The notes under the pieces: model-generated
The model's database searches: none
What the model saw: the letters and a program-made list of their open reading frames with translations, nothing else
Told to the model about the DNA's origin: nothing
DNA from: Podarcis vaucheri
Taxonomy: Eukaryota
Reading direction: 5' to 3' (one strand)
NCBI GenBank assembly: GCA_965113315.1
Contig: OZ220365.1
Length of the DNA stretch: 64,000 nucleotides
Translations under genes and position numbers: made by a program
In this document: one piece after another, positions 3,530-61,684 of the stretch
Layout of the letters: the number at the start of each line of letters is the position of its first letter
How positions within the stretch are numbered: position 1 is the first letter of the stretch

Positions 3530-3651
3530 TCAGGTGTCCATATGTCTGACAGCAATACTGAGAAGCTCCTGTGTTTCTGCAATTTGTTGACGGACTTGGT
3601 CAAGGTGCTTCTTCAGTTGGCTCTGGTTGAATGCTGATGAAAACTCTGCAT
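3530..3651 (-). CDS. Vac8-like terminal coding exon 14 (DAEFSSAFNQSQLKKHLDQVRQQIAETQELLSIAVRHMDT*)
   Basis: ttttttag| acceptor, in phase, TGA at 3532-3530. Confidence 0.82.
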
Positions 3652-6600
3652 CTAAAAAATAGGGAAGAAACAACTCAACTTCTAGACCTGCACAACTCGT
3701 CATATGTGTACATCTTGCCCTGGTCCACAACTTTACAAAACATTGGAGAGAGGGTTTGTTCTCCTGTCTTGCATTCAGCTTGGATCTACAAAAATCTGAC
3801 ACTCATATCAAAGCCAAATTGACCAACTTTGAGAACAGGAGTTATCTATTACTCACACCTAATATATTCCTTGTTGTTTTAATACTTCCCAAGAGTAAGT
3901 TTACTTGTTCAACAATGTCTCCTGAGAATCTTGCCTCCTGCTTTCTTTGCTAGGGATATTTCATCACTTTTAGACACAGAGTGCAATGATAATCTAAGCC
4001 ATTTATCAAACATTTATGCATGCAAGTTATTTTGCATTCCATGTTAACGGATACATTTTTTAAAAAAGTAAGTCAGGTTTGGTGCTGGAAGGTGCATATA
4101 TAACTACTTTCCCACTCTGATATTTTTAAAATGCCAAAAAAGAAGACTGCTCCCCACTTTTTTATGAGAACCGTAAATAGCTGTTTCCAGGATTCATATA
4201 TGAGATTATGAGAACAGATTCAGTTCCAGTAGGAAGCTTGTAATGAATACGGCAAATGAGCCTGTATAAAGTTCTGATTGCATTCTCAGTGAAATGAGAG
4301 TCAATTAACTTTCCACCAAACCTTTTTTAAAGGAGGACTTTGGTTTTCATTACCAGAAACAGGCACGACTCAGCTGTGCATTATAGCTGCGGTGCTTCTG
4401 GTAAGTACTGATGAGCTTAGCTGTTATGCCATAGCATAGGAATCCCATGGGATATTATGTGGTGAGTGATACAGCAGTCCATACCTTTCTGTAATATGCA
4501 GAGAGTGGATATGCCCAGATGCTGAAAGCGATTCTCTTGGTGAATAAGATACTTGATGAGGTATTGCTGCACCTTGCTCATATGAGGTTTCAACAAAGAC
4601 ACCACCTCTTCTGTGCAATTAATTTGGAGACAGGAATAATTATAAAACTGAATGCATGAGGCAACATTTTACACACTTAACCTGGGAGTAAGTCACTGAA
4701 CAAAGTGGGATTTCTTCTGTGTAAACATACACTGTAAAATGTTGATACCCCATTACATTGCTGATGCACTACTTAGTTCTCTTGTTACTAAGTTGTTGGG
4801 TGAATGACAAATTATAAATTGGTATTCATAGTTTGATAATGCTTATGATAATTTTATGGTGGGAAATGTATGCTTGGGCAGATGTTTAGTGTGATCATTT
4901 TTATTGTGTTTTTTATATTTGTTTACTATGTAATTTGCCTTGAGACCTTAATAAATAAAGATTTTATAAAGCTAATTAATAATATTCAGAATTCATATAT
5001 ACCAGTCATGAATGCCAGTATGGCATGGAGAATAGAGCCTTAAACTTCAGGTTTGGTTCATAAAGTTGAAGTTTGTAAATCGGAATGATAAGATTTCTTG
5101 ATGATTTTGGCTGCTATAATAATAATAATAATATACACTCACTGTGATTATTCTGAATCTGACACTTATAACAGCTGTTATTTTTAAATGTTATATTGTG
5201 CATTCAACAGAAACATCATGTTTATGTTATCATTGGAAGCAAATTAAGCATCACTTCATATGGTGCGCAGTGATGCACAAATATTTTAGCGGCTTTGTGC
5301 AGTCTTCAACAGGGAAATGTAATCCTGAGAAAAGGATGTACACACACAAAACAGAAGCTCCTGCCATGAACTCAACATGTATTCTTTGCACCCAAAGGAG
5401 TCTGCTGGTGTGGGACAACTGATAGATGCAGCTGCCACTTGGTCCAGAGGGGGGGGGGCATCTTAGGGAGTCCTATTGTAGCCCAGGGAACTCTCTGAAA
5501 ACTCTCCTAGAATTAGCAGGATTGGAAAATAAATAAAAGTTTTGTCAAAGCTGACTGGTACAGTGCTCTCCCCTGCTATTCAACCTGTTTGGGCCCATGG
5601 GACTTCTGTTGTTGTCACCTGAGTGATATCAGGCATGCTGGAAATGCAAACATCAGATCTTTTACATTGATACGTACTGTGCTGTAGGAGGTGTTTGATC
5701 ACAAGGGCAGCGTGGAACGGAAGCTCTGCTTGTTCCAATTGGCCAGCCAGTGTCGCTAGACTGCATACCACTGAGTCATCCACCGATTCCAGCATGCGCA
5801 CTGTGGCTCCCTCTGGTGGTAGAAGAGCAGAGTAAAAGACTAAATCAGCACAGTTGAAATAAAAGACGACAAATGAACAGGCCTAGGGCCAAGGCTGAAA
5901 AGACACTAGCAGAGCTTGGGAGGCCAGTAAAATGGATTTCAGAAGACTAAGGTGGGGTGGGTCAAAATGTTCAGAAGCAGATATAGGTGGGAAGATTCCT
6001 TAGGGAGGGTTTCACCAATGGGAAATTAGATGTCCTGCTGCTCTGCTACCTCCCTTTCCATACATTCAGCTAGTAAACACCTAGAGGGCACCATGTTTGC
6101 CTCTGCTGGTCTAGAAGCACTAGAGAAATTACTAGCAATGTCAACACTACGTTACAGATACAACTCTTTAAGTTGGGATTAAAATCACTTGTCTGTGGTG
6201 TTTCACTCCTATTAGCAGCTCTGGTAGCTATGCAGCCAGTGGATAATGTAGAACTGACTGTGGGAATCTGTTGATTTTTACGACTGCCCTTTGGTTCCCT
6301 CTGTGTCCCAAAATTGTAAGGCTGCTGCAACCCTATGCACACTGACTTTTGCATAGGTAAAGGCTACAGCACTTCCTTCTGAGCAGACATGCATAACACT
6401 GTGCTGTAAAGTTGGCAGCAGCAACGGAAATCAATGAGTACAAAATGTGTGTGCTCTCAACCCATCCACTCAGCACTGAATGCCCCCTTACCATGTTTCA
6501 TCAGGTCAACAAGACAAGACATTACACAGTGAAGAGATTCCTCTTCTAGAAAGTCTATACTCTGGACAGCTTGAAAAAGTCCTTCAATGCACGGACTTTC

Positions 6601-9600
6601 TATGACTCTCTGCAAATAACAAAAGTAGATAATGTTATTACATTCATTCTGAAAATTGTGGTGCCCCCCCCCCCCCGCAATTATAGATGCCAAGCTCTTA
6701 GTTTGCCTTGGGCCTTCAGGGCTGTGCCTATTCAGCTGTTAAGCCCAGAAATGTGTGCAACAAAGGCATCTGTGGGGATATTATCTATGCAAATGCATGT
6801 TCTATTAAATGCTCTAGTTATGCATCATGACGCCCTGAGACTGTCCCACCAGGAGAGTTCAAATTACATGGATGTGCTTGAAACTAATGAGTACAGAGTA
6901 AGTCTGCAATGATATGTGTTACAATAGCCTTCATTTCACAAGAAGCCATCAAGTGTGTGATAACAAGGCAATCTGGGAGATGGTATGAGGAGCCAAGAAT
7001 ATATGGAATATTTCCTGCAAACATTTATCCATACACAGTGGGTTTCCACTTTCTTGAGCAATTATCATCTAAGGCCCTTCTTTGTGTGCTTCCTCTATGA
7101 GAGGTCTGGAGGATGGCAACATGAGAATGGGCCTTTTCTGCAGTTGCTCCCTGTTTGTGGAATGCTCTCCCCAGGGAGGCTTGCCTGGTGCCTTCATTAT
7201 ATATCCTTAGGTGCCAGGCAAAAATGTTTCTCTATAACCAGGCCTTTGGTTGGTTGAGAATTCTATGGCCTTTTAAATGTGTTTGTGGGAAGGGGTGTTA
7301 TTGGTTGGTTTTTGGTTTTGTTTTATTATGTATTTTGTGTTCTCATTTTGTATTTTTATGTTGTGAACTGCCCTATGGTCTTCAAATGGAGAACAGTATA
7401 CAAATTTAATGAAGGAGGAGGAGGAGGAACAGGAACAACCTAGTTGAAAAAGCATGTATACCAACAAAGCCAAATTTCCAAAAAGCCTACAGTGAAGGCG
7501 TAAAAGTCACAACTTGCTTTTTATTTGTTGGTAAGATTTTTCTTGTGTACTTTTTGAAACACGTGGTCATTTACTCCCTTGAATGAAGCAAAGACAATGT
7601 ATCATTTTAATTATAAGGTTGCCAGATGTCCCTGTTACCAGACAGTCCCCAGATTTACAAATCAGTCCCCATACAAAATTCATTGAAGTTGAAAAGTGTC
7701 CCCAGATTCATTGGGGGGAAAATCTGGTAACCTTCTTTTAATATCACTTAGTAAGAGAAACAGTGAAGTGAAGCCTTCAGAACAATGTGTAATCCTGAAA
7801 GGGAGACTTGGCACTCACCTCTATGCTTCTTGAAAGGCTGAGATTTTTAATAAAGCAGGCAGCGTGACCTACAATCACTGGGTCCATTTTCCAGGCGAGC
7901 AGCAGGTTCCCTACCGCCTGCAGCACTTCATCACACATCAGTGCATCCTGCAGAGGGAAAGGTAGCCAGTGAGTAGCTGAAATGAAGGCAGCAGAAGAGA
8001 CATGGTTCTACCATACCACTGTGAATGGGACTAGAGATGGGTGATTGAGATATAGATATATAGATATAGATCACTTGATTGTTAATAAAAAGCTCAAAGC
8101 AGGTAAAAAAAGAATAAAAACAATAAAATTATCAGTAAAAAAAACCCCAATTAAAACTAGTATTTAAAACATTAAAAAAATTAAAAATCAGCAATAAACT
8201 AAAACCAGAAAACACATGCCAATATTCTGCATGTCCAGACAGGCCTTTTGAAACAAACATGTTTTTTTTTTTTAAAAAAAGCAGGCACCAAAAAGAGTAG
8301 AGTGAATGAATTACTAAGGAATCAAAGAGATAAGCTTTAAGTTTTTAAAACTTTACATTTAGGATGAACTGCAACAAGTGTATTGCAATTTGGGAGCTAC
8401 AATTATGAAGAACTATGAAAAGCTCCACAAATTGTCTCTTCGTGTTTCAGTCCCAACTAACGGCAGCAATGCGGAGAAATCGAGCCTCCACTACCTCCAA
8501 ACCACATCAGATGATACTGAAATGTGTGTGTGCATCCAATGGCACATGCAGGATTTGACTTTCCTGTTCCACCACAAAACTCCCATGTTACAAGCTCCAT
8601 TCGTTTTATTGATGCCTGTGTCCCACCATATTGAGACTCGTATGTCACTCCCACATCCGAATGCATTTTTGCAGGCAAGTTTATATTATGAAGATGTGGG
8701 GCTTTTCCGTTTGTTAAGGAATGAAGGTGCTATGAAGTCAACCAAACCCAAAGTCACCAAAGAACAAATGATTTCTTCTTCCCTAGGAACACAGTGTAGT
8801 GTTGGTAACCACTGAAACATTAGTTCATCTTGGTTGGAAATGTTAGCTTTGTCCCACAGTTTGTTTTCCTGCTGGGGTTCCCATGGAGAGCTCCTTTTCT
8901 ACTTCACTTGGAATTCAGGTCAGAGCAGAATGGGAATCCTTGAAAAGGTCTTTTAAAAAACAACCCTAGGCTGGAGGGCATTGAAACAAGTAGTCTGAGC
9001 AAACCAAGATGAAAAGATGACCCAACAGAAGACAATATAAACATCTCTACTGAGGATTAATTGTTCAGGTTTCCTCTGTCACAGAACATTTTCTCCAATG
9101 CCAAAGCAGCTATACCATCCATCACAACCACAAATGGATATTTGCTACAGAATGTGAATCTCGAGAAGACAGATTAGATCCCAATATGATTATAATCAGA
9201 ATTTGTTCCCAGCGCTCCCTTTCCAACCTTATTTCTGGATATGCACATCATCCCACACTTTCAAATGCATGCTGAAGCCTTTTCAGAATGAATTTTGAAT
9301 TATTGTCTACTGATCACCTGGCCGTGTCAAACTGTCATTTTAAATGTGTTACCTTTGATGAAACTTTTGTCCACTGTCATCTTTCAAGGTTGAGCTGCCT
9401 CGGAACATTACGGCCATGCACATTTGACTAAAGCTTACAAGGCAAAGGGTAGTATAAAACAGAAATGTGTACCTGGTTGTCTGGGTGCTGGGATAAAATC
9501 CGGAGAAGAATGATGGAATTGTGCTGAGTGTCTTTCTTGTTAGATGCCAGGAGAGGGAGCAGGTGGGACGGGATCTGCAAAGCAACGATGCTGGTCTGAC

Positions 9601-12600
9601 CACTCTCTGTTTGGAAAATGAGAAGGTTGCTCAAGGTCATGTGTGTAGATCAATAGAAGCTGCTTTGGAGAAAAGGATTTGTGAGAAAAAGGGGCCTCCT
9701 CTAGACTGACTCAATCAAGTCAGCTGGACTTCACAGATCAGACAATGTTATGTTATGATAGTATAGAAGTTAAACTTCTCATTTTAATGAAAAGTCAAAA
9801 GAAGATGAAGACCAAACTGCACAAGAGGGTTGGATCGGTGTTCTGGCCAATGGCATAAAAGAACGGGGGAAAGATAGACCAATAGGATGTTTGAGCAATG
9901 CAAAATGTTTGTAGAAAGGCACTGCTGGAATTCTCTTCAGAATCAGGGGACTGAAATTGATAGAAAGGGTACAGTGGGTACAGAGAGTTGTGTTTCTGTA
10001 ACTTTGGTTGGGATTGTGGTTGTTCAAAATCAGCTGCTAGGCGGAAGTGGCTGACTGCAGCCTCTGGATTAGATAACCACTGGATTAGATCACACACACA
10101 CAATGGCACATGGATTAGATCACACACACAGTGCGTTTTTCGGGGGGGGGGATGTATAGGGGCACTCTCATTTTCCTATTCATAAGAATACTATTGAAAT
10201 ACTGCCCCTCAATGAGGCCAAACTTAGATTCACAAAATGTTTAGGGGTATGCATACCCCTGCAACCCCCCAGAAAAAGCTGTGTGTGTGTGTGTGTGTGT
10301 ATCCATACTCTTGTCTACTTTTTCCTTACAGAATTGACAGTTTAAGAATGGTAAAAGGAAGTGTATGGATTTGTAGTTATAATCCATATTATTATCCATA
10401 TTATCCATAATGATCTTGCTTGTCAGTTTAAAACACAGAGAGAGATCTTTCATTACAAGCACATGAGCAAAAATGTCAGTGACCAGGGATATTTTTCACC
10501 AACTCCTTCTTCAGTCTCTTTTCTCCTTTTATAGATGGTGTAAAACTTCCACATGATCTCTCCCCCGCCCCGAACATCTGTGGCAGAAATGTGCCTTGAG
10601 CATTGTAAGGTATTGGTCAATCAAGTTTTACTAATCTTTACATCAGTCTGAATGCTGGATTGGTTTGCAGTCACCTCCTCTAAAAAACTGAATCCGTGTT
10701 GGTTGGTATACTTTAGAACAACAGTACTGTCATTCTCACAGCCTCTGGTAACTGAAGGGTTTATTAACTTTCAAAAAAAAAAAAGTCACACCATCCACGT
10801 GCCTGAAACCAAAACATGGTATTCGTCTTACTTAAAAGAACAAAGAGTGACTTGAGGACATTCCTTCCAGAGGCTAGACTGTACAAAACACAGGAAGGAG
10901 GGGGTTCTATTTTTGTATGTTTTAAGTGACTGCAATTTTTCGTTTATTAGCATGCTAGGACTGTAGTACTTACCACTTGCGGCTAAATTCCTGAGACAGA
11001 CACAAGCCTGGTTGGAAACCTAGTTGCAGAAAACAAAGAAATCAGAACCCAACAGAGAAACAACTTTTGGCTGTGAAACGGCTGCAAAACTGACTGGTCT
11101 ACAAATAGCTTCGTGCAATACTTGCTAAACCTCCAAAATGTTCTGACAGGATTATGTGTCAATGATGGGTAAAGTTGAAATGTAAGCATGTCCTCTGTGG
11201 CAACATGAGGCAAAACTAAGCCTTTAAAGCCAACTGTGAGAGTGCCCCATAGATATCTGAGAGATACTCAAAAAAGCACTACTTATGGGTGCCTAATAGT
11301 ACAAGGATGTGTAGCCTTTCAGAAGAACAAATTGCTCTTGATTTAAGGTGCATACACACCATACATGTAAAACATACTTAAAACACATGACAACTCCCCC
11401 CAAAAAAGAAAAGAATAATGGAACTGTAGTTTAACAGTGCTACAAATTGAAGCTCTGTGAGGGGTAAACTACAGTGCTCCGGATACTCTGAGGGAAGTCA
11501 CGTGCTTTAAATGCATGGTGTGTATGCAGCCTTAGTGAACAATCCAGTTAATTTTGCATTTGTTTGGGAAGATCTGTAATTGTGATATTTTACTCCCCAC
11601 ACTACCTCACAATCTTCCCCAGGCAGAGATTAGGAAAAAGCCCATCCCTATATTCCCAGGCCATCACTGTGAGAATTAAAATATTGAACCAAGAGATCTC
11701 ACCATTATTTAAACATGGAATCCCCTCTGACTGTAGGAGATTCTGAGTTTGATCTCTTAGAAATTCATGGAAGATGCCACATCTAGCTAACTCCAGCCTT
11801 TGTGTATTCTTGCGCCCCCATGCTGAAGAAAGCATCTTTTCAGTCATTTCCCTGAACACAAGATATTTAGCCTGCAGTCCTAAGCATACAGTACCTTACT
11901 TGGAAATACATCCCACTGGTATCAATATAATATTTCTGAATAAACCAGGGAGGCTGTTAGTAAAACAAACCTGCATAATCCACAGCTTTACCTTGTCTAC
12001 AGATGAATACAGAAGGAAAAGGAGCATCCGCAGAAGAAACCTATCACTGGTTTGGAGCATGGCTTTATGGTGCTGCGAGTTTGTGGCCATGTTGCTCAGA
12101 GCTGCACAGCTATAATACTGTAAGAAGGAGAAGTGTTGTGATTTAGAGAAAGGAAAGCTTGTGGCCAAGGGTTCTTAAACTGTGGTCAAGACCTCACAGC
12201 AAATGAAAGGGACCATGACTGATGATGGCGTTCCTAGGGTGATCAGATTGAGAAGAGTATTTGCATACAGCATCTCCCTGCATTTTCTGGATTGGCACTG
12301 TAGTACACCTCCAGGAGTTTTGGGAATGTCCCAGGAAAAAAAGAATATTTGTCCAACGAGACACAACTGTGATCGCTACAGTCCACACAGAATGTGCTGG
12401 TCCTGCACTAGACCCTGCCAACTGTGTCAACCAGCATGTATTGAATTCCCTTGGATTCCCTTCCAACTTTACAATTCTATGGGTCTATGAAATACTCTAT
12501 TTGCCTATATGATTAGAAAATTATCATTGTGTAGAGAGTCTGGATGTCTAAGAGTCAACAAAGGGGGAGAATACTGCAACGGTGAGATGACCAGATCCCT

Positions 12601-15600
12601 TTTCTTAACAAATCATTCACACACTATTTTGTCCCCTTCTGCTAGGCAAATGGCATTCCTTGCATTCGTAAAATGCTCTTCATGAGGCTGTTTACAATTC
12701 TCAGGAGTAATAGTAATAGAATAAAAATCTACACTCCAGTCATGTATTTACATGTTTGCATTTCTCTTGCACTAGCCTATTTGAAGATGAGAAAGAAGTA
12801 TTTGTTCAGTTCTTGAATCTCAAACAGGTTAGAGCCTATTAATAGCTATTTCCAAACAAAAGTTGAGAACAGAACTGAGGAACTGGAATACCCCCTGGCT
12901 ATTTTCTTTAACCCTACAACAAATCTGAACTATGAAACGAGCACCTTTCTTCAAGCTGCAATGACCTGTTTCTTCATTTCACTAAAGAGGTTAGCAGTTC
13001 ATTTCCAAGGTGCACAACCCTATGTAGTACCCCCCTTCAAGTAAAAGTATGTGCAACACCATTGAATTACTAATTTCTGGAAGTTAAAATGTTAAAAGAC
13101 TACTGTCTCGTCTATCTTTTCCTGTGTCTGTAGGTTCAGTTGAGCAGCTGACTATTTCCACAGCTTTGAATGCTCAAAAACTGTTTTAAAGTCAAGTTTA
13201 CCTGTACTTCCGAGTCGGCAGACTGTAACAAAAGGGTGAGGACTGGAAGAGCACCTTGTCGAAACAAAATTTGCTGAATCCATTCTGCAAGGGAAGAGTG
13301 GTATTGCTAATGAGCTATTTTGACCAAATGAACATGCTCTTTATCATCACTGCATAGTTAAGAGCTAAAAATAGCATCTTCTGGGAATAAGCCCAATTGG
13401 AATCAATTGGCTTTCCCACTGAGTAGACATGATTTAGCATTGTACTTGAAGTAAAACATTTCATTTTAAAGAAAACAATAGCTTTGACGATAAGTTTCCC
13501 TTGCCACAAATTTCTGTGTCAATGTGCTTGGCCCATTGAAATAAATCCTCTGCAGCCTAATACCTGATTGTGTGAGGTTGAAAATTGCTCCAACTGCATT
13601 TTGTTGGACTCTTGGATCGTAGGATTTAGAAAGGGCCAGTAAGGGTACCACTCCTCCTGCTGCTGCGATGGCTTCATGGCTGACATCTGGCAAAACAACA
13701 GGGCAAAATAGAAATCAACAAGGTTTCTTTGGAGGAAGAAGTATCCATGTTCCTCCAGGCACACTTCGAAGAACAGAGAGTGGACAGCATAAAACAGTTG
13801 CAGCATATGAGTTGGGGGTCCTGGGTGCCTAGTGGCAGAATGAATAATGTTAAAAGTTTACCATCAGGTTTTTGTGAAGCTTATTGCTATGGGTCACCTG
13901 ACTTTAGAAAGTACACTTCATTATTTATTAAGATTTGAACCCAGGACTCCAAGGCCAACTTTATATTTATTGCACAGTATGGGGCCAGTGACTAGGCAGT
14001 TCTTAGGCAATCCTGGAGGACTGCATTGGCTCCACTTGTGCGTCTGTGAAGCACCAAGCGTGTCACCACCCGGAGCCATCTAGGTAAACTACAGTCAAAC
14101 TGGTGTCAGAAGTGTGCCTCCACAAGCTCTGCCCCACTACACTGGCCACGACTAGTTATAGCATACCAGTGTGAATAATCCACTCTGCTCGCAGAATTCA
14201 GCTCTTCTTGATTCAGAATTTATATAACGATAAGGCACATCATTACCTCCCAATCACAAGGTGTGGATGTGACATTGTCCCCGGACCTGATTATTGCGCT
14301 ATGCTTTGGGCACGCTCCTCACCTGTGACAGCTAGTGTCATTATGCAGGCACAGGAATTACACTGGACCGTGGCATCTTCAGACTCAAGCAGTTCCAGAA
14401 TTGGCTCAATTAGATCCATTTGGACGACATGATCCTTGGTTACTGTTTGTCAGTAAAAGCAGGAGTAAATGTTATTTTTAAAGTGCCTTTAATTCAGCTA
14501 TATACTGGAGAGAGAAAAGGATTGCCATCAGCACACAGTATCAGTACATCTTACACCGGAATAAATGATTTCTCATCCTTTTGGTACGAGAAGTAAGCAA
14601 AACCTATCCTCTGAATGAATGCTTCCCCCCCCAAAAAAAAAAAACCCCACACATTTTATCAGGGCAAACATCCATCCTACTGATTATCACTTTTTAGTAT
14701 AGGAATTTATATCTTGCCCTTCAAATAAAATACCAGGGCAACTAGACAGTGGTAGTTCCTAAGATCACAGCAGATGCTGATGGAGACTTAAGGATATGGT
14801 ATCTTGGGCATTTACTCACCATTTCCTTCCAGTAAGAAATTCACAAGGGACGACGATGAAATCTGCTGAACCTCCAAGTCATTAGACTTCAACAAAGCAT
14901 AGTATATTTCCAGATGCTCTCGAGGCAGCTGGATGTTCACTGCAAGAATGAGATGAAATGCTGATTGTAAAAAGCTCTTCTGGAACACTTTCCCCTTACA
15001 TCTTCAAACAGTTGATGCTTTTAGAGCAACACCTAGATGGCCTGCTTTGCTTTTCAAAATACCTTGTAGCCCTCCTTCCAGCTGTCTGTGCAAATTCACA
15101 TGAAAACTAAACCTGTATTACTTATTTTTACTAGCCCCTCTTCTGCCAACCTCTCATATGAGTAAAAAGCCAGCTAGCACTCGCCCACCTCTATAAAATA
15201 ATAAAATGGGAGACTAGTAACAAAAGTTACTGCCACATTATCTGAGCTCCAAGTAAATATCCACAGAACTTGCATTAGAAGGGGCTAGACCCAATTCACA
15301 CATTCTAGGGAACCAATAAGACTGCCTTGGGCACAACTCAGCTATGTTTGGGATAAATTGTTTTGCTTCTCCAGGTTTCTACAAATTTTCAAAAAAGAGA
15401 GTATGGAATGGATCTTACAGTTTTGATGATTTATGTTCAAGTAATACAGAGCAGCAGACTTTTGCAAGCCAGGGTTCTCTGAAAACGCCAAGGTCCTCAG
15501 AGCCTCCAGGGAGACTTTGCCAAGTGGTGACATTTCAAAACCTTAAGAAAGATGTGATAATAACAGAGTCTGAATTGTGTCAGAAGAAGTTAAATACCTG

Positions 15601-16639
15601 AAGAGTCCAAATGCACAGAATTTAAAGCAACAGATAAAACACAAGAGAGACAAACTTTCATGTAGGAATATTCTCTCATTTAAAATTAGCATACTAGATA
15701 GAGCTAAACAAATGACCGCAAAAACTATTAATCCCCCCATTCGTTTTTGCAGTCCAAACCTCATGTGAGGAAAAAAGTTGTTATATATGCCAGTTTGTGA
15801 GAGTAGTTGGGACATTCCAAACTTGGATTTCTGTTACTGTATTTAGCAAACCAGCTTAGCCATGCTATTTCCTTGATTATCAAGGATGAAAACAAAAGAT
15901 GGGAGCACTTAAGAGTTGGAAGAAGTGGACAGCATTCCATTTGACGTCTTTCTGTTTTCAAATAATAAATTCAAATCCAATCCTCTAATACCTAATAGGT
16001 TTTTACAGAGAGTATTTCAGTGTTGGCTTAGGAAAGTGCTCGTGCTTGTAGCAAAAGTGTTTTTTAGTCTTTGAAGATGCCACAATGTTTTTTGTTGCTT
16101 TTATGCAACAGGCTAACAGGTCTACCCCTTGCTATGATGCCTTTTGTAGAACTGGGAATTCAAATGCTGAATGAGAGTAATTTAATCAATCAGCCTGGAA
16201 CTGGGATCCACTGCTTTGTCTGAATATTTGGTGCTGGTGAAATACTGGTTCCCCCATTCTCCCTCCATTGCTCTTAAGAGCAGAAGCATAAACAGCTCTG
16301 TGTCATTCACTTTATAGGATCACTGAACTGCATGATCTTAAACAAAGCAACCGAGCTCAAGTAAACATCTCTCCAACTTTGGCTGCCCCACCTTCATAAC
16401 AGAAACTTCTCACCTCTTTCAATCTGCTGCAGAAACTCCTGAGCAATCTCCTCTTCCTGGGTCTGAAGGGCAGGCTTGTATAGCTGCTTTGTTTTAAAGT
16501 TTTTCCGCTTCAGACAGGGGCACTCATGGATCTGACCCAAGCACTCCTGAATATCCTGCACCAGACCCAAAGACAGTGTTTTTACTGAGAGAGCCAAGTC
16601 ACAAAGCAACTGGACACACTTTGTACACAGCTGACCCAT
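3530..16639 (-). CDS. Vac8-like armadillo-repeat protein, 14 coding exons, 576 aa (whole CDS span)
   Basis: Exons on minus strand: 16639-16414, 15541-15419, 14939-14820, 14442-14323, 13686-13564, 13284-13202, 12117-11992, 11019-10974, 9606-9473, 7947-7819, 6609-6492, 5812-5678, 4610-4485, 3651-3530. All introns GT-AG with matching phases; total 1731 nt = 576 aa + TGA. Peptides such as [47 protein letters not shown] and EVQYYSCAALSNMA track yeast Vac8 ([61 protein letters not shown]; from memory). Confidence 0.88.
4485..4610 (-). CDS. Vac8-like exon 13 (KEVVSLLKPHMSKVQQYLIKYLIHQENRFQHLGISTLCILQK)
   Basis: gcacag| acceptor, G|GTATGG donor; resembles Vac8 FLIRFLKSDYATFEHIALWTILQL. Confidence 0.83.
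5678..5812 (-). CDS. Vac8-like exon 12 (EGATVRMLESVDDSVVCSLATLAGQLEQAELPFHAALVIKHLLQH)
   Basis: caccag| acceptor, A|GTACGT donor; 135 nt, phase 1-1. Confidence 0.82.
6492..6609 (-). CDS. Vac8-like exon 11 (RVIESPCIEGLFQAVQSIDFLEEESLHCVMSCLVDLMKH)
   Basis: ttgcag| acceptor, G|GTAAGG donor. Confidence 0.83.
7090..7420 (+). mobile_element. Degraded L2-type LINE 3' fragment
   Basis: GGGCCTTTTCTGCAGTTGCTCCC...TGGAATGCTCTCCC (RAFS..AP.LWN.LP-like) followed by a T-rich tail. Confidence 0.5.
7819..7947 (-). CDS. Vac8-like exon 10 (DALMCDEVLQAVGNLLLAWKMDPVIVGHAACFIKNLSLSRSIE)
   Basis: ctgcag| acceptor, GAG|GTGAGT donor. Confidence 0.87.
9473..9606 (-). CDS. Vac8-like exon 9 (ESGQTSIVALQIPSHLLPLLASNKKDTQHNSIILLRILSQHPDNQ)
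   Basis: aaacag| acceptor, CAG|GTACAC donor; phase-compatible. Confidence 0.85.
10280..10300. repeat. (TG)n microsatellite
   Basis: Direct observation. Confidence 0.9.
10974..11019 (-). CDS. Vac8-like exon 8 (VSNQACVCLRNLAAS)
   Basis: 46-nt exon, actag| acceptor, G|GTAAGT donor; matches Vac8 VKCQATLALRNLAS. Confidence 0.88.
11344..11534. mobile_element. Degenerate palindromic MITE
   Basis: Ends AAGGTGCATACACACCAT... / ...ATGGTGTGTATGCAGCCTT are inverted repeats; inner CTGTAGTTTA / TAAACTACAG are also inverted. Confidence 0.6.
11992..12117 (-). CDS. Vac8-like exon 7 (YYSCAALSNMATNSQHHKAMLQTSDRFLLRMLLFLLYSSVDK)
   Basis: ttacag| acceptor, AAG|GTAAAG donor; phase 0. Confidence 0.9.
13202..13284 (-). 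CDS. Vac8-like exon 6 (EWIQQILFRQGALPVLTLLLQSADSEVQ)
   Basis: ttgcag| acceptor, CAG|GTAAAC donor. Confidence 0.9.
13564..13686 (-). CDS. Vac8-like exon 5 ([41 protein letters not shown])
   Basis: tgccag| acceptor, G|GTATTA donor; textbook ARM repeat. Confidence 0.9.
14323..14442 (-). CDS. Vac8-like exon 4 ([40 protein letters not shown])
   Basis: aaacag| acceptor, G|GTGAGG donor; 120 nt ARM repeat. Confidence 0.88.
14820..14939 (-). CDS. Vac8-like exon 3 (LNIQLPREHLEIYYALLKSNDLEVQQISSSSLVNFLLEGN)
   Basis: ttgcag| acceptor, G|GTGAGT donor; 120 nt. Confidence 0.88.
15419..15541 (-). CDS. Vac8-like exon 2 ([41 protein letters not shown])
   Basis: cttaag| acceptor, T|GTAAGA donor; 123 nt; ARM-like. 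Confidence 0.88.
16414..16639 (-). CDS. Vac8-like coding exon 1 (MGQLCTKC...QQIER)
   Basis: ATG in AATCATGG context; donor G|GTGAGA; phase 1. Confidence 0.85.
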
Positions 16640-17319
16640 GATTAACTTTCGGATCCAACAGAAAATCAGAAATGCAGACTGAGAGTTTGTACTCCCGCTG
16701 TTGCTCCTGTGTTCCCTTGTACTGGCAGATTGTGATCTAGATATCTCAAAAAATAATTATCTAGACAAGTTGGGAGGAAAAGCTACTGCTGCTTTCTGTG
16801 TCCAAGCAGCATGGCTGAGCAAAATCTAACCGCTGTTCTCTCTTGCGAAGCATAAGAAATACTTTTAAAACTTTAGGCTGCAGCCGGGGGTGATCACCTT
16901 TCCTCTATTTTAGGAAAGAGAAAAATTAGGCGGTCAAACAAAAACTGTACATTCAGAATCCACCTCTGTTCTGTAGCAGAGAAATCATGTTTTGTATGCC
17001 AAGAATAAGGTCAACTGTTTTGGAAGGCTAGCAGCAACAGCCTCTGGGATAACAAACAAAAGAATGCTTGCATATTGTGGAGTGACATCATGGGTGAGGG
17101 CAGCACACCTGCTGGGCTCCACCTCTACAACTGAGCTGCCAATCAGAAAAGACAAAAAATAATAATAAACTAACAAGAAATTCCAGTTTCTACCAGACAG
17201 AAACAATAGTACTGTCTGGTTGGCCGGCCGGCCATAATGGCTTTGAATACTTCACGTAGGCAAACGCAGAAGAATACACAAATGCAACCACAATCATTAA
17301 CATTTAGTTTGCTATCCCT

Positions 17320-17710
17320 CCCACTTTGATGTCATCTGCAAATTTGATGAGCATCCCCTCAATTCCTTCACCCAAGTTGCTTATAAGGACACCACAGGAG
17401 CCAACTCCTAGGGGCAGAACCCTGCAGCACGACACTTGCCACTTTCCCCCAGGATGATGGGGAAACATAATGGGTCTTAGTAATCACAGCATCATTTTCC
17501 TACTACCTACACCAAGTTGACCAGTTTGTAGTTACCTGGTGTGTGGGGGAGACATTTGCCCACCTCCAGTCTGCAGGGACCTAAACCTAATCCAAGAATG
17601 CTCAAAGATTATAGACAGAGGCTTTGAGATTACACCCACAAGCTCCTTTAGTAGCCTTGAATGCAGCTCATCAGGCCATGGAGATCTGAATTCATTTAAA
17701 GTAGCTTAGC
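17320..17710 (-). mobile_element. CR1 LINE reverse-transcriptase fragment
   Basis: Minus strand of 17331-17351 reads CTCATCAAATTTGCAGATGAC = LIKFADD (RT catalytic motif). Confidence 0.65.
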
Positions 17711-17797
17711 TGTTTCTTTACCACCTCTTTTCTTATCTTAGTCTGTCCTGACTTCTATTAAGCCAAATTTCATCCTTACTTCCTGGCCACTGCCTCC

Positions 17798-17940
17798 AAT
17801 CATAGAATATTAGAATTGTAGAGTTGGAAGGAACTACAAGAGTCATCTAACCCAACCCCCTGCAATGCAGGAACCTTTTGCCCAACATTGGACTCGAACT
17901 CACAGCCCTGAGATTAAGAGTCTCATACCGACTGAGCTAT
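17798..17940 (-). mobile_element. tRNA-derived SINE with CR1-like tail
   Basis: Minus strand starts ATAGCTCAGTCGG (A box), has GAGTTCGAGTCC (B box) and ends CCTTCCAACTCTACAATTCTA..TTCTATGAT. Confidence 0.65.
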
Positions 17941-18317
17941 CACAATCAGTACATAAAATCCTACATAAAATAAATATAAATACCACATGGTGCAAATATT
18001 CAATTTATTCCAAAGGCCTGAATGCATAAATGCCCTTCAAGTGGCAACAAATTGACAATACTGAGGGGGGCAGTCATTTCAACAATGAGATGTAGTTCCA
18101 CAATTGTGGTGCTGTCACAGAGAAGGTCCTGCTCCGCATATGGGCAACATATTCAGCAGCACAGCAAGCAGGGATGTGCTTGATCGAAAATTTGGGGTTT
18201 GACTCAAGAAAATCACTATTTTATATTTCAAAATGGGAAAAATAAATACAGTAAATGGACAAAAGTACAGAGGTTCAAAAAATGTTTAGGGGACCCCTGC
18301 GTCCCCCCAGAAAAAAC

Positions 18318-18354
18318 CACATACTATACTATATTATACTATACTATACTATAC
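18318..18354. repeat. (ATACT)n pentanucleotide repeat
   Basis: Direct observation. Confidence 0.8.
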
Positions 18355-19499
18355 CTAAATTGCTTAAACTTATACTACTGTAAGTGATATATAACGATAG
18401 CAGCATGAGTGAAGAGTGCCACCTATTGATATGTTCTGTCCTTAGAGTCATAAAGTATACAATACGGCTTCTTTCCCTACCTATTCAATTTTGTAAAGAC
18501 CCACAATGTACAAGCGATAGATGACAGAAGCTGCTTTATTTCTTTCGTAAATTGTTGCTTATAAGGTATTTACAAGAGGTGTGCTTTGGCTCTCTGTGAA
18601 GCCTAAATGACAATGTGAAATGAGGGATTTGGACAGTATGTACATGCCCAGGTCAGATTGTGCTGTTAATAAGGTGTCTCATGTTGAATCAGGGATACTC
18701 TAAAGTCCCAAGTCACTTTGTGGACTTAAGTGCTCATATATGGCAAAACCATGCCAGCTAGGCAAACACCATAACCTTGAGTGGGGAAGGAACTGAGAGG
18801 TTGGGAGCATCTTTCATTTTGATGGATGGACAGGTCTAGGTTTCAATAACAGTGGATCATTTCCCCAGGACACTCCATGTGAAAACGGATAGGGTCAGTT
18901 AGCCAGTTTTAAAACATGGGTTCTATGAAATTGAAATGCTAAGTAATGATGGTTGGGATTGATGGGGATGGAACTGATGGCTGGGAAATGAGCTCAGCGT
19001 TAGCGCCAAAGGTACAGAAGCTGACTGGATGGCAAGAAACAAGTTGCTGTATCTCAGTCCAACCTACATTAAATGGATGTTGTGATGCTACAACGCTGTT
19101 CTAAAACAACAAGAAGAGTTTTGTGGCACCTTACAGGGTAACAATTGTGGCATGAATTTGTTTTAAGATGCCACGGAACTATTCATTCTTTATGCAGCAA
19201 CGGACTCAAAAGACTGAAAAATGCCATTCTATACTTTTCCCAAGAAAGGGCACAATAAACTAAAAAGAGAAGTGCAAAGTAGGAGACTGTACAGTATCCT
19301 GGATTTGAACCAAGGAACGCAGCTCAATGGCTGGCTTTAAGGCAGTTACACAATTTCCCTGCTAACCCTATGCGCGAACATTTTCCTAAATGAGCAAAAT
19401 AATGAGAACCCGAAATTATCTGCCCTTATGTTTTCCCCAAAACTATGGCGTAATCCCGCAGCTATAGCAAAACTCTGAAGACTCGAGCAATCAGCCCTA

Positions 19500-20900
19500 T
19501 TTATTACCCGTGATTTGTTGCGCAGACGATACCTAACAAGAAAAAAAAAGCGCCACAGGGCGCATGCGCCTCAGCAGCATAGGCTTTTCCCTCCGTGTCC
19601 TTCCCGCACAAGGAAAGATCACGTGAGCCCGAAGACTTCCTGCCAGGGCAGCTAGCGTCACTCACACCGCCTCGGCCGCTTCTAACCGCCATCTTTCATA
19701 CGGGTAGCCGGAGACGCCAAGGTAAAGAGGTCATATTTCCTCTCCGCCCTCTCTCCGAGCGGAAGTGATGCCATCGTGCTATTCTAACGTCGCAGAAAGT
19801 GGTTTTCTCTCTCTATGGTTGTTCCTTCCTCTCTGTCTCTCTCCCCCGCCACCCCCCATTTCTTTTCCTTCGCCGAGACTGGAAATGGCCGCCGAGCGGT
19901 AGAGAGCCGAAGGGGAGCTGTCGCTCAGAGAAGGGTGAGCCATAGCCAACGCAGGACTTGGAACGGCCCGAGGAGGGCTGGAACCAGAGAGGTCTTTTGC
20001 CTGCTCGGGTTTTTCCTCGGACGCCATGGGTGCCGCTCCCTCCAAACACCCCCCCCCACCGCCAGCTTTCGGAGCTCCGGCGCGAGAAGCCTCGTTAGCG
20101 CGCTCGGCAACCCTCCCCCGCCCCCCGCTTCCAGACGCCGTTATTTTTTGAAAAATTCCCTCGAGTTCTTCCCTTCGCAACCCCCCCCCCTTTTTCTAAC
20201 TGAAGGCGGGGGAGGGGCTTGGTCTGCCTCACAAGGGCGGGAGGAACTGAGGGGGAGGGGGACTAGAGGCGGCTCCCATCTCCCTCACGCACACACTGCG
20301 CGCAGCCTCCCTTGTTTGGACCAGGGCCCGTCATCTCTCCCCGCTCCCTACCGCCTCTTTCCCCCATGGGGCGGGGGGGGAGGAAACAGGTAGGCCGGAA
20401 CGAGGCCGGCTGGGCGGGCCCAAGGAGAGCGGCCCGCCTCGCCCCTCGAGAGCCGGGGGGGGGGGCGTCGCTTTCTGATTAGTCTTTTCCGCGCGACGAG
20501 CGGCGCCTGATAACGTTTTGACTTGCCTCCATCTTTCGCCACCCTGACCAATCAGTTGAAGGGCGACGAGGTGTAGCTAGGGGGAAGGAGAGAGTCCTTG
20601 GCAGCCTCCCGGCACACTCGCCGCACCGAAGGCCCTAAATGGATGCCTCGAACACGCATGTCGCCATGCATGTGTCCTGCCAGGCAGCTGCCCGTAACTG
20701 GCTGCAGCTCCCAGTTGAGCACCAGACCTTTTGTTGAGAAAGGCGAAAAGGTTTGCAGAGTACAGTAGTCAGTGGATCGAGCCTTCTTCACACAGTGCCA
20801 GGACTCTGGGCAAGTCCGCACGATTAAATTTGCTTCCAAATGATGCTCAAGAGTGTTTCGCGGGAGGCCTTATATTGGAGAAAGGGGGTGTATCCTTAAG
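19500..20900. promoter_or_regulatory. BCLAF1: CpG island / BCLAF1 promoter
   Basis: High CpG density; NRF1 palindrome GCGCATGCGC 19560-19569, E-box TCACGTGA 19619-19626, YY1 CCGCCATCTT 19686-19695, ETS CGGAAGTG 19760-19767; first donor G|GTGAGC at 19934/19935. Confidence 0.85.
19780..19934 (+). other. BCLAF1: BCLAF1 non-coding exon 1 (5' start approximate)
   Basis: Follows the promoter motif cluster; ends at donor AAGG|GTGAGC. Confidence 0.65.
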
Positions 20901-25907: not shown

Positions 25908-28900
25908 GTACATTTCTTCCATTTATCAACTTTCTCCGTGGTATAGTTCTTTAAAAACATTTGAAAGACAGACTTTATTATCAGCAGAAATTTGAAATGA
26001 ATGCTAAGAATCACATCATAGCTTAAGTGCTGTTTTGAGAAGATTCAACTGATTTTAGAAGACATTTTTTGCTTTGTCTACTGAAGCTTGTAGGCTACTG
26101 TTGAGTGTGGAGTAGTTGTACAGAGGATGTACAGGACTTAATGCTTATAGCAGATGAAATGTCAAGAAAGAAATGCCTATAAACAAGAGAAACCAAGGGA
26201 ATTAGTTGCTCTGATTCTTTACCCTGACTCTCCCCAGCCAGCTCCCATCATATAAACAGAAAGAGTAGCTAGCTGCACATTTCTTTGAGGGAGAGCTTCT
26301 ATATTTTATTCCATTGACAGAGCACTTTGAACCTCAAAGGCTGCCGTTCAGAGTGCCTCCTGATCTTAATGGAGTTACTTGGGGGCAGGGGTGTCTCTGG
26401 GCCATGCCACTGTACATAATATGGGTAACTCTTATTTTAGAAGAGTCATAAACTATGGGCACTAACATTTCTATTTATCTTAGTTCTAGGTCTCGGTCTA
26501 GGACGTACTCACGATCTCGCAGTAGAGATCGTGTTTATAATAGAGATTACCGCAGAGATTACAGAAATAATAGAGGAATGAGACGCCCCTATGGCTATAG
26601 AGGAAGAGGTAGAGGATATTATCCAGGAGGTGGAGGTAGATACCACCGTGGAGGTTACAGACCTGTTTGGAATAGAAGACACTCTCGAAGCCCTAGACGA
26701 GGTCGCTCACGTTCTAGAAGTCCAAAGAGAAGGTCAGTCTCTTCCCAGAGATCTCGGAGCAGATCTCGCCGATCCTACAGATCTTCCAGGTCTCCAAGAT
26801 CCTCTTCATCTCGGTCTTCATCTCCATATAGCAAGTCTCCTGTATCTTCTAAAAGACGTGGGTCATCAGAAAAGCAAGCAAAGAAAACGGAGGGAGCTGC
26901 TTTACAAGACAGTCCATTAAAAAATAAATCACAAGAGGAGGAGAAGGGTGCATTTGAACATGATCCTTCTGAGGCACTAGATGATTTCAGTAAATCTGCA
27001 GCAGCTTCAGGTGATATTTGGCCTGGCCTTTCAGCATATGATAACAGTCCAAGGTCTCCCCATAGTCTTTCTATTGCTTCCCCACCTAGTCAGAGTTCCT
27101 CATGCTCTGATGCCCACTTACTCAGCACAGTCCACTCAGCAAAAAACACACCTCAGCACTCACATTCCATTCAACATAGCCCTGAGAGGTCTGGGTCTGG
27201 CTCCCTTGGAAATGGCTCTAGTCGCTATAGCCCTTCCCAGAATAGCCCACTGCATCACATTCCTTCAAGGAGAAGTCCTGCTAAAGCAGTTGCATCGCAG
27301 AATGCTCCACGTGAGGAATCTCGGATACGTTCATTTTATCCTGAAGCTGGGGATCAAGAAAGTACAAAGGGTGCAAAATTTCTGAAAAGGTAGGAACCGT
27401 AACTACAAAAATAAAGATAGCATAAATAGTACAGTAAGCATACTTCTTTATACATGTATATTGTGCAATGAAAAGTACCTGAATTTTCTCTAATTTTATG
27501 CTGGTTATACTTAGGTTCTGACTTAGGAATGTATACATGAACTTTTCATTGTTTCTCAGTCAGAGCTGTAAATATACGTTTTCATTAGTATGTTACAGTG
27601 TCTTCATTGGAAGCAATTAAAGAATAAATACACTGCAGATTAATGTGTATTGAGAGTTCTGTTAAGAGAGTGATTTTCCCATACTTTTTATAGCTTTAAT
27701 AAGAGTTGCTCTAGCAGTGTTAAGCAGTAGTGCTGAAAGATCCTTTTGTCTTGGTAAAGGAAATACCATTGTGGTGGCCCAGATTTTTCAAAATTGCAAG
27801 ATTGTATCTATCTTCAGTAGAGAAACATAATTTGTTAAATTTAAACTGGACATTGGCAACTTTCTAGCTGACAAGGTTCTCACCTTTGTTTATAATGTAT
27901 CTGTAGAACTGAACATAGCAGTAACCATTTATGCAATGTTGTGTCTTTTAAAAACGAAATAACCAGTTGGAAATCTGTTTATCGGAGCTCTGCAGGATAG
28001 ATAGCACAATTCTGTTCACTTCTCAAATTACTGAATATATCTTCGGAAATATATATTTTTTTATAAAGGAAAATTTTTCTATTTGCTTAGTAATATATAA
28101 TAAATGGCATACAAATATCGTAGAAGATTACAAATGAAATAGACTAGGGGGCTAGATGTACTTTTAATATATAGGAGAGACTAAAAATCACATTGTATTG
28201 CTTCAGTAACTGCTTTGGCAAATGCCTTGCAATTTATTGTATCCAAATTGTGAGTGTGTTCTACTATGTAAGCAGTGTAAGAAGACATTTTATAAGCTGT
28301 TTTTTTACAGTGTTATATGCTCTGAACTTCTGGAATTAAATGGGATACAGATACTGTATTTGTGCTGAAATGTATTTAAGAAAAATAATGATTTGTAAAA
28401 GAGAGCAGTTTTCTTACAAGATAAAGTAGGCACAAGAAATAGTTAAAAAATCTGAAGAGCCACTGAAGAATCTCATCAGTCAATATATAAAAAACGTTAT
28501 AATTGTGTAATTAAATTTGTTTGCTTTGGTACTCATTTTGTGGAGTTGGGATGCCATAAGGATAAATGCTACAAACTGAAATGAAAGCAGTTGGGAGTTA
28601 TTCTCCTCTTCTTTGCCATCCACAGGTACACAGATGAAGAGTCTAGAGTATACCTGCTTGATAGGAGTAATGCTAGGGAGAAAGATGGTCAGAAGGAGAG
28701 AGGGCTAGAAAAAGGGAGGACAGAGGGAGAGAGAGAGTGGGAGGACCAAGAAGCTTTGGAATATTATATGGATAAAGAATCTGGAAAACAAAAATTTAAT
28801 GACTCTGAAGGGGAGGACACAGAGGAGACTGAAGATTATAGACAGTTCAGAAAGTCTGTTTTGGCAGATCAGGGTAAGGGCTTTGCTGCATCTCACCGGA

Positions 28901-50958: not shown

Positions 50959-61684
<10,726 letters not shown>

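Follow-up and report, generated by a model that had tools for sequence, protein, structure and literature searches.

A Vac8-like gene next to BCLAF1 in the lizard Podarcis vaucheri: gene structure, family membership and likely orthology

The Vac8-like locus and its transcripts

The stretch analyzed here, 64,000 nucleotides of Podarcis vaucheri DNA (GenBank assembly GCA_965113315.1, contig OZ220365.1; 'the window'), contains on its minus strand, from position 16639 down to 3530, a 14-exon gene whose product resembles the fungal armadillo (ARM) repeat protein Vac8. It is a real and expressed gene and the sole Vac8-family gene found for vertebrates; taken together, the analyses make it probable that it is a vertically inherited and fast-evolved orthologue, and one whose product would serve, by the mechanism that we infer, as a membrane-anchored adaptor. 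The gene was delineated by tblastn of full-length relatives on the window, these relatives having been retrieved by a deep search seeded with one exon piece, and the exon borders were then set by AG/GT signals, phase and homology. The exon lengths add up to 1,731 nt, i.e., 576 codons and a TGA stop; all 13 introns are of the GT-AG type with compatible phases (1,1,1,1,1,0,0,1,0,0,1,1,1), and translation of each of the 14 exons in its own frame revealed no internal stop. These figures confirm the gene model of the first-pass annotation, made from the sequence alone, which had described 14 in-phase GT-AG exons and a 576-residue open reading frame (ORF) devoid of stops. The start ATG has an A at -3 and a G at +4, and there is no in-frame ATG upstream of it. 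The length and frame of the window product were checked by arithmetic and per exon, and peptides of 12-13 residues were translated over the candidate splice sites. For homology searches, either exon pieces were used or, as a proxy, the annotated Podarcis muralis protein P0258, which is 98% identical to the window product and differs from the window exons in 12 of 567 whole-codon residues; the proteins of P. muralis, P. raffonei and P. lilfordi each have 12-20 mismatches to the window.

Transcription of the gene was examined in region 10900-16700. Eighteen sequencing runs contained 5-14% of the words sampled from this region, and since exons occupy about 17% of the region, such a share fits contigs made of exons only. 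Contigs from four runs, representing three organisms and four studies, were then aligned to these 5,801 bases, which cover introns 1-7. All seven introns were found to be bridged to the base at the predicted sites, each joint occurring in one to four runs: 16414/15541 (three runs), 15419/14939 (three runs), 14820/14442 (all four runs), 14323/13686, 13564/13284 (one run), 13202/12117 (two runs) and 11992/11019 (two runs). Every joint reads CT..AC on the plus strand and hence GT..AG on the strand of the gene. One contig of 2,812 nt covers exons 1-8, and its free end at 10974 runs into the first bases of exon 9. The runs are presumed to be RNA, as intron-less contigs with canonical sites at the predicted positions are hard to explain otherwise; spliced transcripts, on which the earlier proposal had been made to depend, are thus seen across introns 1-7. 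The later junctions (9-13) rest on the GT-AG rule, homology and identity with the junction residues of the RefSeq model. It is to be noted that in introns 7 and 6 (11437-11536 and 12448-12490, respectively) many contigs began or ended with unrelated loose ends in all four runs, as happens with interspersed repeats, and that two of the four runs also contained intronic pieces diverged by 4-6% from the window.

The individual exons, all on the minus strand, are as follows. The coding part of exon 1 (16414..16639) begins with the start codon at 16639, comprises codons 1-75 plus one nucleotide, ends at the donor gag/GTGAGA at 16414, and encodes an N-terminal helix, Cys clusters and an H1-type helix. 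It is followed by exon 2 (15419..15541, 123 nt) and exon 3 (14820..14939, 120 nt), both with AG/GT borders; by exons 4 (14323..14442, 120 nt) and 5 (13564..13686, 123 nt), each encoding one ARM repeat; and by exons 6 (13202..13284, 83 nt), 7 (11992..12117, 126 nt) and 8 (10974..11019, 46 nt), the last of which carries Arg317 (R317 in one-letter code, used hereafter). Exons 9 (9473..9606, 134 nt, carrying R358), 10 (7819..7947, 129 nt, carrying K401), 11 (6492..6609, 118 nt) and 12 (5678..5812, 135 nt) are supported by GT-AG borders, homology and the same junction residues as in P. muralis P0258. Exon 13 (4485..4610, 126 nt) encodes the last ARM repeat with RFQHLGISTLCIL, which aligns to the last repeat of Vac8, and the coding part of exon 14 (3530..3651, 122 nt including the TGA at 3532-3530) encodes a C-terminal helix, both being defined by GT-AG borders and homology. 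An additional exon candidate at 11605-11895 was dropped, having neither a Pfam match nor homology. The internal exons are mostly about 120-135 nt long, or roughly one ARM repeat apiece, and the first five introns are all in phase 1, a layout that is modular.

The gene had also been placed next to BCLAF1, and this position was verified within the window, to which the reading of the neighborhood was confined (MAP7 lies outside): exons of the THRAP3/BCLAF1 family were located on the plus strand at 26455-27393 and 28591-29298. Farther along the same strand, at 58188-58520, lies an exon for the C-terminal portion of a mitochondrial fission regulator (Pfam Mito_fiss_reg, E 2e-19); this exon probably belongs to MTFR2 downstream of BCLAF1, in keeping with the gene order BCLAF1-MTFR2. 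The Vac8-like gene (minus) and the BCLAF1-family gene (plus) are arranged head-to-head, and the sequence that separates them includes a GC-rich stretch at about 19.8-20.4 kb; the 20-22 kb bin has a GC content of 0.49, and ORF noise of the CpG-island type occurs at 19.8-20.4 kb. Since the 2,812-nt contig contains about 480 nt of 5' sequence beyond the aligned region, an exon of the 5' untranslated region may lie near a shared bidirectional promoter, somewhere in 16700-20400. Elsewhere in the window there is a run of 274 N (38421-38694) inside the BCLAF1-family gene region, a second GC-rich patch at about 49.5-49.9 kb, and, at 53757-54379 on the minus strand, a set of overlapping ORFs that resemble the end of a retroelement ORF frequent in the genomes of reptiles and fishes.

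Membership in the Vac8 family

The Pfam Arm profile scored above its gathering cut-off in the pieces from exons 4 and 5 (26 and 28.7 bits, respectively), and for both pieces yeast Vac8 was the best natural match in the PDB, with E values of the order of 1e-14 (4.5e-14 and 2.4e-14). In the full-length P. muralis P0258, Pfam found Arm/HEAT-type matches only (80 bits), and no Ank, IBB, Arm_3, BTB, kinase or other domain. When P0258 was searched against the PDB, its residues 84-532 aligned collinearly, and in a single alignment, to positions 37-480 of the Vac8 chain (175 bits, E 2e-50), in agreement with the earlier remark that the lizard protein follows Vac8 block by block. The same search returned 52 bits for beta-catenin and 49 bits for importin-alpha, each over about 150 residues. 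In the reverse search, with fungal Vac8 as query, the best natural non-Vac8 chains listed were plakoglobin (110 bits), importin-alpha (104 bits), ODAD2/ARMC4 (103 bits) and beta-catenin (about 89 bits), all of them partial. Considering that the lizard-type protein reaches 175 bits to Vac8, against at most 110 bits for the mammalian chains listed, it is closer to Vac8 than those ARM families are; this pairwise comparison covered catenins, plakoglobin, importin-alpha and ODAD2/ARMC4, with ARMC3, ANKAR and RAP1GDS1 outside it. With locally built profiles, the vertebrate proteins scored 355-440 bits against the invertebrate Vac8 profile and 218-333 bits against the fungal one, always as one full-length collinear domain; on the same profiles, unrelated ARM proteins attained at most 156 bits per domain.

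Structure prediction led to the same family. An AlphaFold2 model was built from an alignment of 44 sequences (22 vertebrates, 13 invertebrates and 9 fungi), and had a mean predicted local distance difference test score (pLDDT) of 89.2 and a predicted template modeling score (pTM) of 0.80. Its layout consists of a helix (residues 6-38), a disordered linker (39-59), a second helix (60-74), the ARM solenoid (about 84-545) and a terminal helix (549-574). In Foldseek, the crystal structures of Vac8 (7ycj, 6kbm, 5xjg and 6kbn) ranked first, with template modeling (TM) scores of 0.80-0.85 on the target, root-mean-square deviations (rmsd) of 3.5-6.0 Å and 28-30% identity, and beta-catenin came next at a TM of about 0.6. 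The superposition on Vac8 that the first-pass annotation had called for was therefore obtained, and both the sequence search and the fold search of the PDB put Vac8 at the top. The likeness to fungal Vac8 (S. cerevisiae Vac8p; PDB 5XJG, 6KBM, 6KBN, 7YCJ) extends to the collinear ARM superhelix of about 450 residues at 28-30% identity, and to the length of the protein, 576 residues in the lizard and 578 in yeast. Beta-catenin, plakoglobin and importin-alpha share with it the 12-repeat ARM fold and a groove for extended peptides, but they match over about 150 residues only, at about 50 bits, with a TM of about 0.6 and an rmsd of about 7 Å; moreover, the lizard-type protein has neither the IBB nor the Arm_3 match of importin-alpha, and no catenin N- or C-terminal region either.

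A second body of evidence comes from the N-terminal part, which lies outside the ARM repeats. Codons 1-13 of the window (16601..16639, minus strand), read directly as MGQLCTKCVQLLC, contain Gly2 and Thr6 as well as Cys5, Cys8 and Cys13, which are candidate sites for S-acylation. Codons 40-42 (16514..16522, minus) form a CxC cluster that, in the 44-sequence alignment, stands in line with the Cys cluster of invertebrate and fungal Vac8; the C42 column holds Cys in 22 of 22 vertebrates, 12 of 13 invertebrates and 8 of 9 fungi. Codons 53-74 (16418..16483, minus), LYKPALQTQEEEIAQEFLQQIE, are the counterpart of the pre-ARM H1 motif of Vac8, LYEPLL..NEREAV..LL.YLE, as judged by motif comparison and by the model helix 60-74. 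In fungal Vac8 the N-terminus is MG plus a Cys cluster, then some 10 residues, then LYEPLL..NEREAV..LL.YLEN; in invertebrates a short helical extension precedes a dense Cys cluster, followed by identical spacing and motif; and in the lizard the order is C40-x-C42, 10 residues, then LYKPALQTQEEEIAQEFLQQIE. Thus, the cluster sits 10-11 residues before the LYxP motif in fungi, invertebrates and vertebrates alike, and the helix motif LYxPxL..E.EA is common to all three, E62 being invariant in the 44 sequences and L58 and L70 at least 90% conserved. The vertebrate proteins differ from fungal Vac8 by an additional helix at the N-terminus, about 38 residues long, which bears a second pair of Cys and, in many lineages, Gly2. 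A Cys-x-x-Cys near the N-terminus is present in 97 of 104 full-length vertebrate proteins, and Cys5 and Cys8 each in 21 of the 22 aligned vertebrates; 75 of the 104 begin with MG. Invertebrate Vac8-like proteins resemble the vertebrate form in having an N-terminal extension ahead of the Cys cluster, and they are devoid of Gly2. Since a non-ARM module is held in common with fungal Vac8, generic ARM similarity cannot account for the match, and, at the level of motifs, this module is the strongest evidence against a mere ARM likeness.

The assignment of the lizard protein to the Vac8 family, and to none of the ARM families with which it was compared, is therefore well supported, ARMC3 being set apart by description only. 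It is nonetheless necessary to consider whether the protein belongs to some other animal ARM family (ARMC3, ANKAR, RAP1GDS1, catenin or importin-alpha), so that its Vac8 label would be a pipeline artefact and ARMC3 the real counterpart. ARMC3 has about 870 residues and a C-terminal non-ARM domain, and is associated with cilia and testis. By this architecture it is unlike the lizard protein, with its 576 residues and Arm/HEAT-type Pfam matches only, although it is likewise an ARM-repeat protein that the literature ties to autophagy initiation and to Vac8. Several publications call it the homologue or orthologue of Vac8 in mammals (bioRxiv 10.64898/2026.10.05.756849, PMC9735501, PMC12859697, PMC8664900), a view for which PMC9735501 and PMC12859697 cite Lei et al. 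(2021), and recent work treats it as the counterpart of Vac8 in mammals or in Metazoa (bioRxiv 10.64898/2026.10.05.756849; PMC9735501). An Atlas feature search, which provides leads only, gave RAP1GDS1 0.96 and ARMC3 0.94, and ranked ARMC3 below fungal Vac8. On the other side, the full-length collinear match to Vac8 scores 3-4 times as high as beta-catenin or importin-alpha and the best fold match is Vac8; the Cys cluster and LYxPxL..E.EA helix are those of fungal Vac8; Pfam detects no Ank, IBB, BTB, kinase or further domain; and in a published analysis, which speaks of 'vac8p in fungi and plants', vac8p, armc3, armc4 and importin-alpha fall into separate clades (PMC3141441). ARMC3 was not among the PDB matches listed for P0258 or for fungal Vac8, and no EDR1-type domain was found in ten representatives of about 850-950 residues from the deep search, which were ARM+kinase, ARM+BTB and similar proteins. 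Pipelines do name some teleost members after other families, such as 'ankyrin and armadillo repeat-containing protein' (ANKAR) or 'Juxtamembrane domain-associated catenin p120 catenin-like', and this inconsistency would favor the artefact explanation; the ANKAR names, however, look like mislabels themselves, as ANKAR joins ankyrin and ARM repeats and P0258 has no Ank match. Overall, we regard descent from another ARM family as very unlikely.

Within the ARM superhelix, the residues of the inner groove were compared with those of Vac8. The positions R276, R317 and R359, which we presume to be the Arg triad of yeast Vac8, align with R317, R358 and K401 of the lizard, as determined by counting along the Vac8 chain in the PDB alignment. 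The first column (R317 in lizard numbering) is Arg in 13 of 13 invertebrates and 9 of 9 fungi, and the commonest residues in the 22 vertebrates are R (17), N (2), V (1) and Q (1). The second (R358) has R in 12 invertebrates and Q in one, R in all 9 fungi, and most commonly W (7), R (5), S (5) and C (4) in the vertebrates; the third (K401) has R in 13 invertebrates and 9 fungi, and most commonly K (9), Q (5), E (3) and T (2) in the vertebrates. Since the triad columns vary across vertebrates, the R/R/K of the lizard is probably not a constrained triad in the vertebrate clade. We found no use of the phrase 'cationic triad' for Vac8 in the literature. In the yeast protein, R317, N318, N277, N234 and H196 read the backbone of Vac17 (PMC10161063); the counterparts of N277 and N234 are retained in vertebrates, whereas those of R317 and N318 are not, the commonest vertebrate residues in place of N318 being I or T. 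The Asn ladder of ARM2-7 (lizard N185, N226, N233, N274, N318 and N366) and the first triad Arg are retained in the lizard as in fungal Vac8. The near-invariant Vac8 columns are kept by vertebrates at 48 of 66 positions in ARM1-5, where mean column conservation among vertebrates is about 0.8, and at 17 of 44 in ARM6-11. In this region the vertebrate proteins depart from fungal Vac8 in that the last two Arg of the triad and yeast N318 lack conserved counterparts among vertebrates and ARM6-11 are remodelled; a further difference is the C-terminal helix (549-574 in the lizard), which is conserved mainly among vertebrates.

Distribution and descent

With the coelacanth protein as query, the best 120 matches included chimaera, sharks, rays, sturgeon, coelacanth, caecilians, salamander, frogs, turtles, crocodilians, birds, tuatara and many squamates, so that the retention in non-mammalian vertebrates that had been suggested earlier is observed across the non-mammalian jawed vertebrates. 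No mammal was among these 120 matches, in which mammalian orthologues as similar as those of birds would have ranked. Euteleosts among the matches listed were cichlids, stickleback, fugu, guppy, killifish, cod, salmonids and smelts; zebrafish, other cyprinids, catfish and medaka did not occur among the best 120 matches of the teleost search. Identity to the lizard protein is 51-65% in birds, turtles, amphibians, coelacanth and sturgeon, 47-48% in cartilaginous fishes and 36-39% in two teleosts. With the scallop protein as query, the matches were molluscs, Lingula, Owenia, Tubulanus, hemichordates, echinoderms, amphioxus and sponges, beyond which the list passed directly to fungal Vac8, with 80-88% of the length aligned at 40-44% identity; its best 120 matches contained no arthropod, nematode, cnidarian or vertebrate. 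The absence of arthropods, nematodes and cnidarians from this list, despite the presence of sponges, lophotrochozoans and deuterostomes, may signify losses of Vac8 beyond that in mammals. As to names, the guess that automated pipelines would label such genes 'vacuolar protein 8-like' proved correct in RefSeq and UniProt: the Xenopus laevis and X. tropicalis entries read 'vacuolar protein 8' and that of Gallus 'vacuolar protein 8-like', the P. muralis protein was renamed from 'vacuolar protein 8-like' to 'uncharacterized protein LOC114594173', and UniProt calls these proteins 'Vacuolar protein 8'. In newer RefSeq releases, many 'vacuolar protein 8-like' names have been lowered to 'uncharacterized protein', as in P. 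muralis.

The same survey bears on the possibility that the gene, though transcribed, has lost its function or is decaying, and is heading for loss as in mammals. The groove in the C-terminal half looks relaxed, no mammal occurs in the coelacanth list, and in a chicken pituitary RNA-seq table the values for LOC421690, 'vacuolar protein 8-like', are below 1 (0.56-0.82; PMC5148799). The ORF, however, is intact not only here but throughout a set of well over 100 species that ranges from sharks to birds, the lizard protein retains the identity given above to birds, turtles, amphibians, coelacanth and sturgeon, ARM1-5 are well conserved, and splicing is canonical in several lacertids. Decay of the gene thus appears exceedingly unlikely.

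For phylogeny, a maximum likelihood tree was computed from 18 vertebrate, 14 invertebrate and 9 fungal proteins and 8 outgroup segments, the outgroups being algal, protist and bacterial ARM/HEAT proteins (550 columns; LG+C20+F+G4). The topology was (outgroups,(fungi,(invertebrates, vertebrates))), with ultrafast bootstrap and SH-aLRT (Shimodaira-Hasegawa-like approximate likelihood ratio test) supports of 100/100 for the Vac8 family, 100/99 for fungi, 100/92 for Metazoa and 100/100 for vertebrates, and the branching among vertebrates matched the species tree. With these outgroups, the lizard-type protein fell within a fully supported Vac8 family. None of the outcomes that the first-pass annotation had named as refutations (grouping with a known vertebrate ARM family, reciprocal best hits other than Vac8, lack of spliced transcripts) was observed. 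The invertebrate 'vacuolar protein 8(-like)' proteins are its nearest relatives both by this tree and by profile. In sequence they are the more conservative: they share 40-44% of their residues with fungal Vac8 and have a near-invariant triad and Asn ladder (one substitution), and their identity to the lizard-type protein is only 29-33%. No second, conservative Vac8 copy was found in any vertebrate in the scallop query list, and no vertebrate-type copy in any invertebrate in the coelacanth query list. Since neither list showed a second copy, the simplest reading is vertical inheritance of a single gene that underwent a burst of change on the stem of the vertebrates, and strict one-to-one orthology is likely.

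Several findings weigh against vertical descent of a Vac8 orthologue or against the role proposed for it. The vertebrate stem measures 1.29 changes per site, far beyond any other internal branch, and the invertebrates, sponges included, form a clade without the vertebrates (98/92). The outgroups of the tree were not named vertebrate ARM families, and ARMC3 was outside the comparison. Triad positions 2 and 3 and the adjacent Asn are variable among vertebrates, as are 25 of the 44 near-invariant ARM6-11 columns, and Gly2 is absent in 29 of the 104 vertebrate proteins, which begin, for example, with MAQLC in turtles, METFC or MATIC in sharks and rays, and MDRLC in a caecilian. The combination of an invertebrate clade with a long vertebrate stem fits long-branch attraction, but it fits old paralogy as well, i.e., a duplication inside the Vac8 family before the sponge-bilaterian split, after which invertebrates would have kept one copy and vertebrates alone the other. 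Such a history would explain why all invertebrates cluster together with the vertebrates outside, and why the scallop protein scores higher with fungal Vac8 (346-365 bits) than with the lizard-type protein (210 bits). It would, however, require reciprocal losses in sponges, protostomes, ambulacrarians, amphioxus and vertebrates, and both types were never seen in one species in the match lists. Moreover, the approximately unbiased (AU) test did not reject a grouping of vertebrates with amphioxus (difference in log-likelihood 5.1, p 0.286), a group chosen after the tree had been seen, although it is the one expected from the species tree, and a stem as long as that of the vertebrates is the classic setting for such a misplacement. 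On balance, ancient paralogy seems improbable, and a single, fast-evolved orthologue is preferred. Of the earlier designation as a 'true Vac8 orthologue', the membership in the Vac8 family therefore stands, on the combined strength of PDB search, fold, profiles, tree and N-terminal module, whereas strict one-to-one orthology is no more than likely in view of the invertebrate clade.

A possible membrane-anchored adaptor

As a fast-evolved Vac8 orthologue, the protein may be tethered to the cytoplasmic face of a membrane by lipid modification, as its motifs suggest. The anchors would be S-acylation of the ancestral C40/C42 cluster and of the vertebrate-specific N-terminal pair C5/C8, to which N-myristoylation of Gly2 might be added in lizards and most tetrapods. 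The MGQLCTK of the window fits the N-myristoylation pattern, with a small residue at position 6 and no Pro at position 7 by our reading of the PROSITE rule. Since Gly2 is missing in the 29 proteins mentioned, myristoylation cannot be essential family-wide; two anchors of the acylation type agree with the data at the motif level, and only the Cys sites would be general. So anchored, the protein would present a superhelix of about 11-12 ARM repeats, the inner groove of which could hold extended peptide segments of partner proteins, and its role would be that of a membrane-anchored adaptor or tether in the manner of Vac8. The H1 helix would be available for regulation of the kind described for Vac8 (PMC7469494).

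The ARM1-5 part of the groove and the H1 helix are retained and ARM6-11 remodelled, and because of this remodelling the vertebrate partners are probably not the yeast set, namely Nvj1, Vac17 and the yeast Atg13 segment. We know of no animal counterparts of Nvj1 and Vac17. In the literature, Nvj1 is likewise stated to have no mammalian counterpart, and Vac8 no obvious mammalian orthologue (PMC4951168). The transfer of function that the first-pass annotation had contemplated, to a lysosome-nucleus tether or an autophagy scaffold, was not supported, considering the long vertebrate stem, the low retention in ARM6-11 and the variable triad. A more specific proposal can be offered only tentatively, and we hold it to be rather doubtful: the true Vac8 orthologue, kept from sponges to birds and lost in mammals, so that ARMC3 is not orthologous to Vac8, would as a doubly acylated adaptor of non-mammalian vertebrates still organize a lysosome or endomembrane contact site or a platform for autophagy initiation, with new partners in its remodelled groove.

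Since RefSeq and UniProt already name the gene, the gene itself is no discovery. What is new is an animal Vac8 that has been overlooked by the literature, in which we found no study of an animal Vac8 orthologue other than ARMC3, and that was not found in mammals among the best 120 matches. A Vac8-family gene, much closer to Vac8 than the mammalian ARM chains listed, is carried by many invertebrate phyla and, among vertebrates, by sharks, ray-finned fishes, coelacanth, amphibians, reptiles and birds, and this reframes the choice of the animal protein to be set against Vac8. Among the bearers of the gene, Xenopus, chicken, stickleback and killifish are tractable systems, in which one may ask what an acyl-anchored ARM tether does and how mammals live without it.

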